DNA of 64,000 bases, taken from Hyphochytrium catenoides (Eukaryota > Protista > Hyphochytriomycota). The notes beneath the pieces are model-generated. The model saw only the letters and a program-made list of their open reading frames with translations, did no database searches and was not told where the DNA came from. How positions within the stretch are numbered: position 1 is the stretch's first letter; each line of letters starts with the position of its first letter. The translations under genes were made by a program, and so were the position numbers. The stretch is taken from contig FLMG01002184.1 of NCBI GenBank assembly GCA_900088475.1, positions 1 to 64,000 of the forward strand, read 5' to 3'. Positions 1,287 to 56,744 of the stretch are shown one piece after another.

Positions 1287-2799
1287 CTAGTAAGCTGCAC
1301 TGCTTCTTGAGACGCTTCTCTTCCGGTCAAGCCGACTCTGCATCTGCTTGATAAATGTGCCATCCGAGTACGTGTAGATAAGCGGCACACCTGATAAGGC
1401 AAGTCACCAGGTTAGTAGCTATTCAATCGATAAAGAGATACAATATCGTAAATGCCTCTACCTGTTGGTGCGAGCAATAGGCAGTCGGCTGGTCTGCTCT
1501 TTTCAATCTTCATTTGCTCGTTCCACTCTTCGTCACTCATGCCATCCAAATATTTAATGATGGTTCGAATGGCAAAGCCGTGTGAAGAGATCAGGACATT
1601 ACGTCCAGCCGCAAGGTGCGGGACCACGTTTCGAATGAACCACGGCACGGTGCGTTCAGCAACATCTCGGGAGCTCTCGCCATTGGGAAACGGTGTGTTG
1701 AAGTCATTCCGCACTTTTGTGAGGTCCTCCTTTGGCATCAGCTTCGTATGCTCCGTGCTTGGAAGACCCTAACATTCATATCCAAGATGGTGAGGACGCT
1801 ACTTTCTCGGAACAGTTTGATGAAAGAAGCAGATTGGGCTAGCCCAATCTACCTGAAAGTCCCCAAAGTTTCTCTCGTTGAGCTCCTTGGCAATATACAC
1901 TGGGATAAGCTGTATAAGGATAAAGCAAAATGAAGAACGTCAGAGACAAACAGGTAGAACAAAGGACGAGAAACTCACCCATTTGAAGGGTTCTGATCCA
2001 TTGAACCCTGAGAACCGTGGTGGATCTAATGGATCACAGTCATACTGAATCAACTACACGGAGCCACAGTATATAGGGTTGGCTGGGAAGACAAGTCAAA
2101 TGAATGTTACTCCGTCCTACCGGCGTTTTCTTGGAGTTATGGTTCATTAACATCAACATTGCAGTTGTCTTGGCACGGTCCATTTCAGATACGAAAACCA
2201 GATCTAAAGGAAGGTTCTTGAGCTCTTCCCCCGCCTCAACGGCTTCATTGACACCTTTCACCCTTAATAGTGGATGTTACGGGTGACAAGAGGATGAGTG
2301 CAAAGGTAGCCAATAGTGACAAGGCCAATCGTACCCTAAAGGAACATCACAGGAGCCAGCATACCGCCAGAGCAGGTCTGGATGATGAGGATCGCGATTC
2401 CACATGGACTGACCGTGGCGGATGAGTACCACTCGACCACGTTTTGTACCGTCACCTCCCGGAGTAGAAGACCACGACAGGGCAGGCTTCACATCCTTTA
2501 GCACCGGTGGACAAGGCTTGGGCTTTTCCCATTGCCGAAGGTTTAATGCTTCGTTGAAGTAATAGTACTTGCCATTATGTCTTCGGCTCTTCCTTCGTTT
2601 CCAGCCTGGGGGTAAGTCAAAGGGCTGACAGACAACAATTAGCAGATGAAGAGACACTTGATGAGCTACCAAACAATATCGTGTTAAACATTACCTGCTC
2701 TTCCTCATCTCGGATGACATGATATATGTAATATAAGCCAGCGACGACGGACGAGGCTAGTAAAGTTCTTAGGAATACAGCATAGCTGTCGTTGGCCAT
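1287..2799 (-). CDS. Cofactor-dependent phosphoglycerate mutase (histidine phosphatase) with N-terminal TM anchor and WW domain; multi-exon
   Basis: Spliced reading MANDSYAVFLRTLLASSVVAGLYYIYHVIRDEEEQ|PFDLPPGWKRRKSRRHNGKYYYFNEALNLRQWEKP (TM, then WW). Catalytic motifs VVLIRHGQSMWN, ELNERNFGDFQ, PNGES, VLISSHG, PTG|VPLIY. Stop TAG at 1287-1289; GT-AG introns keep frame. Confidence 0.88.
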
Positions 2800-4959
2800 A
2801 ATCAAGCCGGTTGCTGCGTATCTATTGGTCTCTAGTCTTTGATGGCAAGGGCAACAAAATGTAGGTGTGCGCCTACGAGTTGAGCCGCGGCACCAAGCAA
2901 GAGGGAAGTAGCCTATTGACGAGGCAGAAGCTGGTGTGGGCACAGCTCCAGAGCAGGCGGCAGAGCAGGCGGTCTTTGTCGTGAGAGGGTAGTGGTGCGT
3001 TGCTAGCCACGCTAGAGTCTCTTCTATTTCCTTATGTCTCCTTCCTCCTGATCCCAGTATCCTGCTGGTACTATGCTTTCATGCTTCTGCTGCTTCGTCC
3101 TAGGCCTTTGTTGGCTCCTTCTTGTTGGCGCTTAACCAGACTTTGGGCTTGGGTAGGTGCAGCATCTGGGATCTCTTCTTTTGCTCTTTCTCATGTGCTA
3201 TAACTACTATGTAGTTCTATCAACAGTTCTCTTCTTTCTCTTTCTTCCTTGTTGTCTCTCCTCCCTTCATTCCCTCTTGTTCCGCTCTCTGATTTCTTGA
3301 TGTGTATGTACAAAAAGTACAGAAACCATATTGTGCGCCCTTTTATACATCAGGGGTTCGGATAATGTAGTCCGCAAGATGTGCGCACTGCTTGCAGGCT
3401 ACTGAAAAGTGGTATGATGATACTGTACTGAGTTTCTATGTTGATTGTTTGTAATAACGATCAATCACCCATCATTTGTGCAGTAGCGTCCATTGATGAC
3501 GGATGCAGCAGCACAGGTACACAGGAGGAAGGAGAAAGAGAAGAAGAAGAGGTAGAAGACAACCGAGTAGTAATCTATTTGTAGGATCCTCCTGACGTGA
3601 CACTCAGTTGATGATGAAATGTCCTTCATCGTTGATGAGAAAGCAGGAAGAAGAACACTTCTATTCGCTGCCGGTAAGTGGTGAGGAATGTTGATGAGGA
3701 GGGCCATAAGGAGTGTTTCTAGTGACTCATTTGATGCTTCTATATCTATGAACGAATCATCAAACAACGTCGTCGTCGAGTGTCTACTTCCCAAGCATTT
3801 TGCCTCCAGTTCAATACCAACATTCACTCGTCGAGTCTCCAGAAGAATGAAGCGAACGGGATGGTACCAACATGATGGCCGACGAGGACTAATGATAGTA
3901 GTCAAAGGAAACTTTCCTTATTGCACCTTCGACATCCAAAGTCAAATCTCTTCTGGTGTCTATGTGCTCCTAGACCACAAGCTTTCCTCCTTCTCTTCCT
4001 CCACTCCTGAACTAGGAAAGAGAACTGTCCGTGATAGCGTTGACGGCGAACGGGCAAAAGTACTATGTGTGCTTTGCCTTTATTATGTACCTCTCAAGAC
4101 CTCCTTCTGCAGGTCATCATCATCATCATCTCAGCATATCATCATCATCATCAAACAAGGAAGTTGTATGAGTACTTCACGAATATAAGTGGCAAAACTA
4201 TTTTCGATAGGGTCTAAGGGGAGCTTCTTCGGGTAGTCTTACCCAGCTTCGCACTATCTATGTGCTACACGTATCTGAGAAGGCGGGGTATGTTCTGGCT
4301 AGGAGTTATTTAGCCCTAGAAAGGTAGGGCATCACATGGAGTGAAGAGTTCAATGTGTGAGGCGGCTCTGTTGCTGTTGAGTGTTGAGGTCCCTTTCTTC
4401 CAGCATCTTCCCCATGCTCCAAGGTGTCAGGGAAAGCTTCGGGGCAGATTGAGCTTCTTCAGGCACAAAGGTCCTCGACCTTTTTGTAGGAAGTGCTTCC
4501 TCTTGCTCGTCGTGTTTGTCCTCCCTGTCGATCTTTCCCTAATCCATCATTCCGCTGGCGCTCCCCCGCCTTGGTCGCGCGCCACCTCGAACCTCATGCA
4601 CAAAGAGGTCGAGCTAGGAAGCCTGTAATTGAGTGCGACTCCTCCGCCGTTTATAGTTGACAATGGGTGGGTAGAGTCTCAGTCAACAGGTGCTGAGAAA
4701 AGGTGGCCGTTGTTGCCACAGTGGTGTACCAGTTGAGCGCAGTAAGGAAGACTTTCAGGAAACGCTGGACAGCTCTGTCCCGCCTAATGGAACTGGCACC
4801 GCTCAGAGCCACCCGAGCCCTTTCTTAGCTGCAAGGTCCACCCCTATATCGGATGCATATCAACTCTGCAGTTTGATCATGAATTGAGCGGAAAGACTAA
4901 GCTGAGGAACGGGTGAAGTGACGCTGGACCTAGCCAGCTGCCGTAGTCAAACAAGGAAC

Positions 4960-7261
4960 ATGAATGCTACCGCTCTCGGGACTAAGAAGTCGCCCTCCTC
5001 CTTTCGGAGTGCCGTGGCTCCAAAAATTCCTTCTTTTAGACTGAATGAGATCCGAACTGAGCTCCAGGCCATTGGGGCTGGCGTTGGAGGTTGGAATCGC
5101 GAAAGGTCCATCTCTGGAATGATTGAGGAGGAGTTCCTGCATCAGTTTGATACAGTTAGGGTAGGTTAATGACGGTGCCAATGACGAAGGCATAAGCTCT
5201 TACAATGAGGCAACAGACTTATGATGTAGGCATAAGCACGGAACAGCTCTTTCGATACTCAGAGCTTTCCGGGGGAAGGAAGACAAAGATCATTTGCGCT
5301 ATCGGACCGCCTTGCCGAAGCCAAGAAATGCTCGGTGAGACATCAAAGATTGCTCTTCCTCAAGTACCATATTCTGAGGATCTGTCTCCCTTGTCACAGG
5401 AAAGCTACTTGACGCCGGAATGAATGTCGCGAGGCTGAACTTCTCACATGGGACACACGAGTACCATCAGGAAAGCTTGGATAATCTCCGCGCTGCTCAA
5501 GCCACGAGGCGAGGCATCCATTGTGCCGTCTTATTGGACACAAAGGGTCCGGAACTACGGACAGGACTTTTAAAGAATCACGGACCGATCCATCTGGTGG
5601 TGAGTGCTATCTTAACGACCCACCAGTCGCTGAGGATTGTTTTAATGACATCTTTTTCATGCAGAGCGGACAAGAGCTAGAGATCACAACTGACTACTCC
5701 CTGGAAGGCGATAACAGCCGGATTACCTGCAACTACCCAGACCTGCCGACAGCCGTGAAGCCAGGCAGTGCAATCCTGTGTGCAGACGGCAGTTTGACGT
5801 TGACAGTGCTCCGATGCCTTGAAAACTCTGTTATCACGCGTGTAGAGAACTCCATCACACTGGAAGAGACCAAAAACTTCTATTTGCCAGGTAACAGAGT
5901 GGTGGATTGACAGAAAGAAGTCTACCTTACCCCCTCGCTTACGATCCTCTAGGAGCCAGGGTAAACTTGCCTCCAGTGACTGAGAAGGATATCGACGATA
6001 TTGTAAACTTCGCAATTCCAAATAGGGTAGATCTCATCTCCACCTCATTCGTTCGCAATGCGGAACACATAAGGTCCGTTTGATAGCTCTTGATGATGAC
6101 CTCAAGCCGGCATTCACGAACTTTTTTCCGGCTTACTTCTGATGGATGAAGAGCGATAAGAAATGTGCTTGGCCCAGAGGGCCGAGATATTCGGGTCAAT
6201 GCCAAGATTGAAAGCCTGGTGTGTACCTTGCGGCCTGCACTTAACAACCAAGTCCATCGACCCTAACTGCTAAGGTTTCACGCTGCAGGAGGCGTTAGAA
6301 AATTTTGATGAGATTTTGAAGGAAGCTGACGGCATTCATGTTAGTAGAGGAGACTTGGGCATGGAGCTACCTCCACAGAAGGTACCCCATATCGTCAGAC
6401 GTCGTTTGCCTCTTTCCTTACGCTCTACGCACTTCGCAGGTCTTTCTCGCCCAGAAGATGATCATTCGCAAAGCAAACATAGCAGGAAAACCTGTGGTCA
6501 CCTCTACCCAGATGCTCGAGTCTATGATAAACAATCCGGTACCCACCTTTGCAGAAGCCTCAGATGTGGCGAATGCAGTTATAGATGGTACAGATGCTGT
6601 AATGCTCTCAGGGGAAACTGCCAAAGGCAAGCACCCAGTTGAGAGCGTGTTAGTCATGTCACGAATCTTGAAGGAGGCCGAGGGTACGTCGCCAGGAGTC
6701 ATTTCCTCCCCACCCCAGCTAGCCCGACAAGCCTACTAACTCTCTATGCCTTAGCTATATTGAACTACGACGAGATGTTTATTGACATCAGAGACTCTAC
6801 GCCAAAACCTGTTGACAAAGGAGAGGCTGTGGCTTCTTCGGCAGTAGCAACTGCTATTGACACTAAGGCTCGCGTCATTGTCGTGCTATCGGAGACAGGC
6901 TATACAGCCCGATGCGTCGCCAAGTACCGTCCCAAGGTTCCTATCGTGGCGGTTACGACATCAGCTAGGGCTGCGAGACAAATGGCTGGCTTGTCAAGGT
7001 ACGCTTAGCGAATTCAGTTACTTTTAGTCGCTCACTGCTGACCTGTAGTTCTTGCTTTCGTCTGTTGGCAGAGGCGTTCATTGCCTAGTCGTGGAGTCTA
7101 TGATAGGTTCTGATACACTATTAAATCGCGGCATACTCTTTGCCCTCAACCAGAGTTGGATACTTCCAGGCGATATGGCAGTCGGTGTCCACGGCTATAA
7201 GGAGGGGCTAGCTGGCACGGCCAGCATCGTTAAAGTTATTAGAGTCAGCGCAAATTTCTAG
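4960..7261 (+). CDS. PK: Pyruvate kinase, ~10 exons, ~85-aa N-terminal extension
   Basis: [87 protein letters not shown]. Introns 56-78 nt. Start ATG is the first in-frame one and is inferred. Confidence 0.95.
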
Positions 7262-55836: not shown

Positions 55837-56744
55837 GATGGGTGGAAGAAATGTTAGGGTCGTGAAGGTTATGGTTATTGATAATAATGAGATTGGAGCT
55901 GGTCACGGTGCAAGACAGAAGCACAGTGGACATTTGGAAAGCGAGAGCCTTACAGCGGCCCCATCGTGAAACTCTAACCAGCGACGAACTGCATGCGTTA
56001 CTTTATGGAGAAGAGACACAATGACAGGAAGATTGGACCCTAGGGAACTACTATGGAAGATACGTGCACAATGTCTATGTCAAGAGGGAACTGGAAGGAA
56101 CAAGAGGAGAAGCTCTTTCTATAGAAGAAGAAGAAGAAGAAAGAAGAGGGGAGGCGGTCGCCGAGCGACATGCGCGTCGGCAACCAAACACAAAAATTAT
56201 GCCGTGGAGTTACCCCGAAGGGCAATCCTGGACTATTACAGCGCCAGAGTGCAGGGCCTGCTCCAGTCCATGTCAACTGCCTGCTTGATCACAGTCGAGC
56301 ACCGACCAGGTAAGTATGCTCTAGATCCTGGAAGGGCTGGCTGTTTATGTACCATCAACGGATCCCACAAGCTGGAGTCAATCGAAGGTAATCCGATTTT
56401 ACTGAATACGGTGTATTTTATTACATATGTGGTACGCCCTATTCCCGATATGGCAATCAAATGGTAACAGAGCTTGTGTCCTGCTACAGTAATACAAGAG
56501 GCCTTTTTAGTTATAGAAGGCCTTATTCAGTTCTACTAGCAAATGCGTTTCTCTGTCTCTTCAAGGGCTGATTGAGTCTGCAGCAGAAGATCTGTCTCGG
56601 CTTTCTTATGAAATGGCTTGCGGTTCGGGACGATGGTGGTGGTCAAGAGTTGGCGTTGACTTGCTATTCCGCTACGAGGATGCTGGGCTAGGAGTCGATG
56701 TTTGACTTGACAGGTCTATGATATCTGTCTAGCAGTAGGCCCCG

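Follow-up and report, generated by a model that had tools for sequence, protein, structure and literature searches.

Gene structure and surroundings

The window, a 64,000-nucleotide stretch of Hyphochytrium catenoides DNA (positions 1 to 64,000 of contig FLMG01002184.1), carries on its minus strand, at 2799..1287, a gene of seven exons whose coding sequence of 1080 nt keeps its frame intact through 359 amino acids. As predicted from the genomic sequence, it is an intact nuclear gene, and its predicted product confirms an architecture in which a hydrophobic N-terminal helix is followed by a WW domain and by an enzyme domain of the cofactor-dependent phosphoglycerate mutase (dPGM) type (Table 1). 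The introns measure 70, 72, 67, 69, 84, and 71 nt (range, 67-84 nt) and are all GT-AG, and no in-frame ATG was present in the 150 nt read upstream of 2799.

Table 1. Positions of the WW-dPGM-like gene, its coding features, and neighboring genes in the window
Feature	Position	Strand	Description
Exon 1	2799-2695	-	105 nt, MANDSYAVFLRTLLASSVVAGLYYIYHVIRDEEEQ; start codon 2799-2797 in context GATTATGG; hydrophobic helix
Hydrophobic helix	2781-2713	-	aa 7-29
Intron 1	2694-2625	-	70 nt, GT..AG, phase 0; joins exon 1 to exon 2
Stop codon TAA in exon-2 frame	2687-2685	-	within intron 1
Exon 2	2624-2335	-	WW domain, Pro/Ser-rich linker (low-confidence), start of catalytic domain
WW domain	2615-2520	-	aa 39-70
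Linker S-S-T-P site	2480-2460	-	aa 84-90
RHG motif	2420-2412	-	exon 2
WRYAGS motif	2369-2352	-	exon 2; family-specific motif
Exon 3	2262-2121	-	catalytic domain, DRAKTT (Arg62 equivalent); Pfam His_Phos_1 E=5.5e-5, NCBIfam NF002217 42 bits, alignment
Exon 4	2053-1979	-	75 nt, LIQYDCDPLDPPRFSGFNGSEPFKW; AG acceptor, GTGAGT donor; easy to overlook
Exon 5	1909-1853	-	LNERNF 1882-1865 with catalytic Glu; Phe at Tyr92 equivalent
Exon 6	1768-1462	-	GLPS, VRND, SHGF, 13-aa family insertion EQMKIEKSRPADC; Pfam E=1.3e-8
SHG motif	1585-1574	-	exon 6; second His kept
Exon 7	1390-1287	-	final strands, C-terminal tail DRKRSVSRSSAAY, stop TAG 1289-1287
C-terminal tail	1328-1290	-	aa 347-359
Spacer region	3030-4230	both	part of the 2.1-kb spacer
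Pyruvate kinase gene	4960-7261	+	multi-exon; Pfam matches to PK barrel and PK_C
Likely first pyruvate kinase exon	4960-5157	+	~66-aa Ser/Arg/Lys-rich extension
U1 spliceosomal snRNA gene	56157-56317	-	full-length Rfam match, 75.7 bits (gathering score 69.5)

Exon 4 was recovered by homology only: it aligns with a loop that every family member shares with the canonical short dPGMs (PLDNPAFEGVNDKNPYDF in Peronospora), and with it a gap of 211 nt becomes two introns, of 67 nt and 69 nt. A six-exon model with one 211-nt intron, coding for 334 aa, was dropped because homology demands the exon at 2053-1979, and an alternative exon at 2025-1979 was dropped because it breaks the frame. Database searches were run exon by exon, and the joined 359-aa sequence entered the local alignment and the tree only.

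The first intron proved as clean as the preliminary description of this locus had claimed, and the frame of the fusion depends on its removal. Since the frame of exon 2 is closed by a TAA within intron 1 and no ATG lies between that stop and the WW domain, translation of the WW domain requires the splice joining 2695 to 2624; if the intron were retained, the exon-1 frame would end at a TGA. The claim that the WW domain runs on into the enzyme in a single exon, with its catalytic motifs intact, likewise held, with RHG in exon 2 and LNER and SHG in later exons. One possibility is that the gene model is an artefact, exon 1 or the WW-coding 5' part of exon 2 being absent from the mature mRNA, which would then yield a plain dPGM-like product, and the absence of a WW domain from the 28 family members examined is consistent with such an error. 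However, the WW domain and RHG share one uninterrupted exon, no ATG occurs from the intron-1 stop to Met109, and a start at Met109 would remove RHG because this residue comes after the catalytic His105. Intron 1 is also a GT-AG, phase-0 intron of the local modal length, and we regard an artefact as highly improbable.

A pyruvate kinase gene is arranged head-to-head with the WW-dPGM-like gene, its ATG lying about 2.1 kb away. The extension encoded by its likely first exon has no Pfam match and may be a mitochondrial presequence. The spacer between the two genes contains, on both strands of the region listed in Table 1, several open reading frames of 40-166 aa, CT-rich tracts, and a CAT/ATC-rich stretch (about 4110-4160). 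The idea that the two genes form a conserved functional pair was not supported, as the adjacency is missing in Saprolegnia and Peronospora. Elsewhere in the window lies a gene for the U1 spliceosomal snRNA.

The stramenopile dPGM-like family and its substrate pocket

An exhaustive HMMER search with the largest catalytic exon returned 908 hits, including a tight group at E values from 1e-34 to 1e-19, in which the full-length proteins have 316-362 aa. In a word search with the best hit, oomycete members of this family were found in Peronospora, Phytophthora, Pythium, Globisporangium, Saprolegnia, Achlya, Thraustotheca, and Aphanomyces, and the family also occurs in the labyrinthulomycete Aplanochytrium and in protists represented by transcriptomes or metagenomes. 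In precomputed Pfam annotations these proteins carry only PF00300, and most have been named dPGM automatically. The next-best matches were dPGMs of ~226 aa from Chlamydiae, Verrucomicrobia, and Bacteroidota, along with a plant protein, at ~35-41% identity, and in metagenome contigs a scan with a family alignment brought up a single distant locus, L001, which is 41% identical over 49 aa.

In a maximum-likelihood tree, the stramenopile family was set apart from canonical short dPGMs with support of 100/100, and within it a helix-less, labyrinthulomycete-like subclade was separated from a subclade of oomycete proteins and the window protein (87/80), the latter being sister to all oomycete members (88/88). 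The family alignment has 68 columns with conservation of at least 90%, at 66 of which the window protein is identical, and its identity to the named oomycete members is 41-52% over the aligned length. Its place in the stramenopile clade is marked by the motifs WRYAGS, xRND, and HGF, by two insertions and the C-terminal tail, and by monophyly. With clade members such as Phytophthora nicotianae PPTG_05490, Phytophthora infestans PITG_02734, Saprolegnia diclina SDRG_13449, and Peronospora farinosa P0001, it shares both the catalytic core and the replaced ligands described below.

The enzyme domain belongs to branch 1 of the histidine phosphatase superfamily (Pfam His_Phos_1), with matches on exons 2, 3, and 6, and its catalytic motifs align with the canonical residues (RHG, 104-106; DRA, 160-162; LNER, 214-217; SHG, 285-287). 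The phospho-histidine set is complete, comprising equivalents of the Arg and His of RHG, the Asn of WN, Arg62, Glu89, and the second His. The whole family retains these residues, along with the Arg of LNER. When exon 6 was searched against the PDB, the best match was the S. pombe dPGM 1fzt (8e-12), and the folds nearest to the AlphaFold model of the Peronospora ortholog were those of dPGM and BPGM (TM about 0.76 by target). Short-form dPGMs (the NF002217/PRK01112 type of Chlamydiae, Bacteroidota, and plants, and S. pombe 1fzt) have in common with the window protein the fold, RHG, WN, Arg62, LNER, and the second His, as well as a short cap region that includes the exon-4 loop, at about 40% identity; compared to them, the window protein adds insertions of 7 and 13 aa, a C-terminal tail, the N-terminal helix, and the WW domain. 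Judged from its sequence, the histidine-phosphatase domain is descended from short-form cofactor-dependent phosphoglycerate mutases.

The substrate pocket presents a different picture from the short-form enzymes. In the alignment, FTGW of canonical dPGMs is replaced by YAGS in the family, with loss of the substrate-loop Thr and Trp, and ERxY is replaced by ERNF, with Phe at the Tyr92 equivalent. Similarly, GLNK has given way to GxPS (GLPS in the window protein), with Ser at the Lys/Arg100 equivalent; WRRS to xRND (VRND in the window protein), with Asn at the Arg117 equivalent; and HGNS to HGFx (SHGF in the window protein), with Phe at the Asn186/190 equivalent. In the crystal structure of human BPGM, the phosphate of 3-PGA is bound by Arg100, Arg116, Arg117, Asn190, and Tyr92 (PMC8972806). 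Four of these five ligands are replaced in the window protein and in the whole clade, the Arg116 equivalent being the one exception. The family has also gained a 7-aa insertion before WRYAGS and a 13-aa insertion before LLAPTG, conserved insertions that adjoin active-site loops, and a conserved C-terminal tail in which the window protein and oomycete orthologs have the motif ...DR..S.SRS.A(P/A)Y in common. Within the tail there is also a basophilic kinase motif of the RxRxxS type, RKRSVS in the window protein and RDRAES in oomycetes.

Profile scores separate the family from canonical enzymes. On the dPGM equivalog model NF002217, which has a cutoff of 320, the canonical short dPGMs P0191 and P0250 scored 341 and 338 bits and five family members 151-183 bits; the window exons, scored singly, sum to about 111 bits. 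The looser subfamily model TIGR01258 (cutoff, 81.7 bits) is passed by the orthologs at 95-119 bits, and exon-by-exon scoring of the window protein gave 13.5 + 17.9 + 48.3 bits, a count that leaves exons 4, 5, and 7 aside.

The N-terminal helix and the WW domain

The hydrophobic helix encoded by exon 1 lies at a position equal to that of the clearer TM helices of oomycete orthologs. In the AlphaFold model of the Peronospora ortholog (pLDDT 80.8), residues 2-30 form an N-terminal helix and the linker is of low confidence. In the window protein the helix is marginally hydrophobic, with a Kyte-Doolittle (KD) 19-window maximum of 1.62 and a Hessa sum of about +3 (+3.2), and the flank that follows it is acidic (RDEEEQ, charge -3). 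The helices of oomycete orthologs span KD values of 1.3-2.7 (2.0-2.7 in Peronosporalean and 1.3-1.6 in Saprolegnian orthologs), and their flanks after the helix carry charges of 0 to +5, mostly +2 to +5 in a basic cluster. Of the signal-anchor-like helix originally described, the helix itself is present, but its hydrophobicity is marginal and its C-terminal flank is acidic; it is a candidate membrane anchor.

These same properties could instead belong to a cleavable signal or targeting peptide, in which case there would be no stable anchor and the mature protein would be soluble in a compartment or secreted. The KD value of 1.62, the Hessa sum of about +3, and an acidic flank, in contrast to the mostly basic ones of oomycete orthologs, all point in this direction, as does a V-A-G/L sequence (the slash marking the cut) that, by eye, resembles a signal-peptidase site. 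However, the helices of Saprolegnian orthologs are equally modest (KD 1.3-1.6), the position of the helix is conserved throughout the clade of oomycetes and the window protein, and WW domains usually work in the cytosol or the nucleus. We consider cleavage improbable and continue to treat the helix as a candidate anchor.

The WW domain matched Pfam PF00397 over the full profile (31/31) with E=2.3e-8 and 34.3 bits against a GA of 26.9, and it has the hallmark tryptophans W43 and W67 and a central YYYFN, in keeping with its earlier description as canonical. The WW domain of human Pin1 was its best single-domain match in the PDB at 35.7 bits; single-WW chains of other proteins scored no more than 25.3 bits, and individual Itch WW domains scored 10-18.5 bits within the full-length chain. 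In Pin1, Arg17 is a key phosphate ligand and the proline is held between Tyr23 and Trp34 (PMC4601027). The window WW is identical to Pin1 at the positions aligned with Arg14, Ser16, Arg17, Tyr23, and Trp34, and it shares with the group IV WW domains of Pin1/Ess1 a long basic loop 1 that holds the Ser16 and Arg17 equivalents. It differs in an extra residue in this loop (spacing from W43 to W67 of 24 versus 23), in having Leu for Thr29 and Glu for His27, and in being joined to a phosphatase-type domain, whereas the Pin1 WW is joined to a parvulin isomerase. These comparisons suggest a Pin1-like domain that would bind pSer/pThr-Pro. A single-sequence AF2 prediction of exon 2, of low confidence (pLDDT 50), has three strands at the places expected of a WW domain and then a low-confidence linker, and gives the WW assignment weak support.

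Between the WW domain and the enzyme runs a Pro/Ser-rich linker of ~28 residues that is probably disordered. The S-S-T-P site within this linker could itself undergo proline-directed phosphorylation and then be bound by the neighboring WW domain.

In oomycete members, the place between helix and enzyme that the WW domain takes in the window protein is occupied by a conserved, juxtamembrane Cys/His-rich module (CxCxDGECCN...LPHAHVxHW). Its fuller form, CxCxDGECCN ... ERRYxLPHAHVxHW ... CDPxW, was seen at roughly residues 30-80 in P0001, P0152, P0160, P0161, P0162, and P0170-P0172; the LPH.H...W pattern is invariant, and the module, which matches no Pfam family, could be metal-binding or palmitoylated. 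We rejected the notion that the LPHAHVxHW...CDPxW module is a decayed WW domain, as no relation between the two was detectable (hhalign probability 0.2%).

None of 28 family members yielded a WW domain, even with the threshold relaxed to E<=1, and WW was not among the 25 families listed for the 150 nearest representatives, five more families with a single member each lying outside that list. A word search with exon 2 (WW plus RHG, 96 aa) gave no candidate among proteins of 53-168 aa, and the best score of exon 2 in the ESM Atlas, 0.78, was uninformative. In the literature, we found no main text on a fusion of WW and histidine phosphatase domains or on family genes of the PPTG_05490/PITG_02734 type. 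Because oomycetes share the helix and lack the WW domain, the layout of helix plus enzyme belongs to the clade, and the WW domain is, within the reach of the data, specific to this lineage. The architecture had been put forward as unrecognized, which applies to the WW domain but not to the combination of a helix with a dPGM-like enzyme. What is new here, at the level of the predicted protein, is a WW domain on an enzyme of an unstudied, dPGM-derived stramenopile family; the layout of helix and mutase-like domain already exists in oomycetes.

Phosphatase or mutase

Because four of the five ligands of the 3-PGA phosphate are replaced and the NF002217 cutoff is missed, the family would more likely be a phosphatase than a glycolytic mutase. 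In this superfamily, phospho-histidine chemistry that is retained with altered specificity usually means a phosphatase. The reading we favor, and in which we place moderate confidence as a whole, is a tethered phosphatase derived from a dPGM, with a changed substrate and recruitment by the WW domain. The phospho-enzyme would still be formed, but 2,3-BPG and 3-PGA would no longer be handled efficiently, and the enzyme would instead dephosphorylate some other substrate. The helix would hold or target the enzyme at a membrane with the catalytic part toward the cytosol, and in this lineage the WW domain would dock it, through phospho-Ser/Thr-Pro or proline-rich sequences, to partners that may be either its substrates or a scaffold. 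Of the two options posed in the preliminary description, a tethered PGAM-fold phosphatase recruited through its WW domain fits best, and an organelle-surface glycolytic enzyme is less likely, given the replaced ligands and the failed equivalog.

Animal PGAM5 is a PGAM-fold phosphatase of mitochondria, anchored by a TM segment and acting on Ser/Thr/His, that is no longer glycolytic; it has a WDxNWD motif and a mitochondrial TM segment bearing a PARL site, and it is not known to carry a WW domain. The window protein resembles it in design only, in that an N-terminal helix would tether an enzyme of the histidine-phosphatase fold. The WDxNWD multimerization motif is absent from the window protein sequence, and PDB sequence searches at E<=1 recovered no PGAM5 chains and were dominated by dPGM and BPGM. 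The earlier proposal of a PGAM5-like phosphatase survives as an analogy of tethered design but not as descent from PGAM5, since the window protein nests beside short-form dPGMs. On these comparisons, the likeness to PGAM5 is one of convergence, not kinship. Should its substrate prove to be a protein, the conversion of a PGAM-fold enzyme to a tethered protein phosphatase, known from PGAM5, would have happened twice and independently.

It could also be argued that the protein is a working 2,3-BPG-dependent phosphoglycerate mutase, a membrane or organelle-surface isoenzyme docked through its WW domain, for example, for channelling toward the pyruvate kinase encoded next door. A complete catalytic core, about 40% identity to short dPGMs, the passing of the TIGR01258 subfamily model by family members, and nearest solved folds that are all true dPGM or BPGM are consistent with such an enzyme, the retained Arg116 could allow some mutase activity, and the pyruvate kinase gene is head-to-head at about 2.1 kb. 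Against this, the loss of four of the five 3-PGA phosphate ligands is clade-wide, scores fall about 140-170 bits short of the equivalog threshold, the conserved insertions lie beside active-site loops, and the pyruvate kinase adjacency is not found in Saprolegnia and Peronospora.

Databases and the work of Abrahamian et al. 2017 also count the Phytophthora ortholog as a phosphoglycerate mutase: PPTG_05490 is listed as cytoplasmic in the PGM-OOMYCETES table of the supplement to that study, as is PITG_02735. The same supplement includes other canonical cytosolic and mitochondrial mutases of oomycetes, which argues against a glycolytic role for this one, and overall we judge a working mutase unlikely, if by no means negligible. 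PPTG_05490 and the P. infestans fragment PITG_02734 both fall in the 90% cluster of the stramenopile dPGM-like family, and PITG_02735 is probably an adjacent fragment of the gene of PITG_02734. The mitochondrial mutase of Phytophthora, PITG_13749, whose location is experimental (Abrahamian et al. 2017 supplement), was considered as an ortholog and left unsupported, as the family traces to PPTG_05490 and PITG_02734 in a comparison of locus tags, not of sequences.

A stramenopile clade that is counted as phosphoglycerate mutase by databases and by at least one oomycete glycolysis survey has a remodelled substrate pocket. The clade, whose oomycete members also have a membrane helix, is probably non-glycolytic, in which case both the tally of phosphoglycerate mutase genes and the flux models of these pathogens of plants and animals may be overestimates. 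The WW-bearing member in the sister lineage of the oomycetes may give access to the substrates or binding partners of this otherwise opaque family of enzymes.

A more specific form of the tethered phosphatase is a reader-eraser, a membrane-bound protein phosphatase derived from a dPGM independently of PGAM5, in which the WW domain would read pSer/pThr-Pro marks and present them to the active site. We offer this as a tentative proposal that is unlikely to hold in all its parts. In a variant of it, the S-T-P site of the linker would possibly serve as an autoinhibitory ligand of the WW domain.

Among the 150 nearest His_Phos_1 representatives, two also carry a pyruvate kinase barrel and another two a 2-hydroxyacid dehydrogenase domain (e.g., P0021), and these domain-bearing representatives are natural fusions of dPGM with neighboring pathway enzymes.
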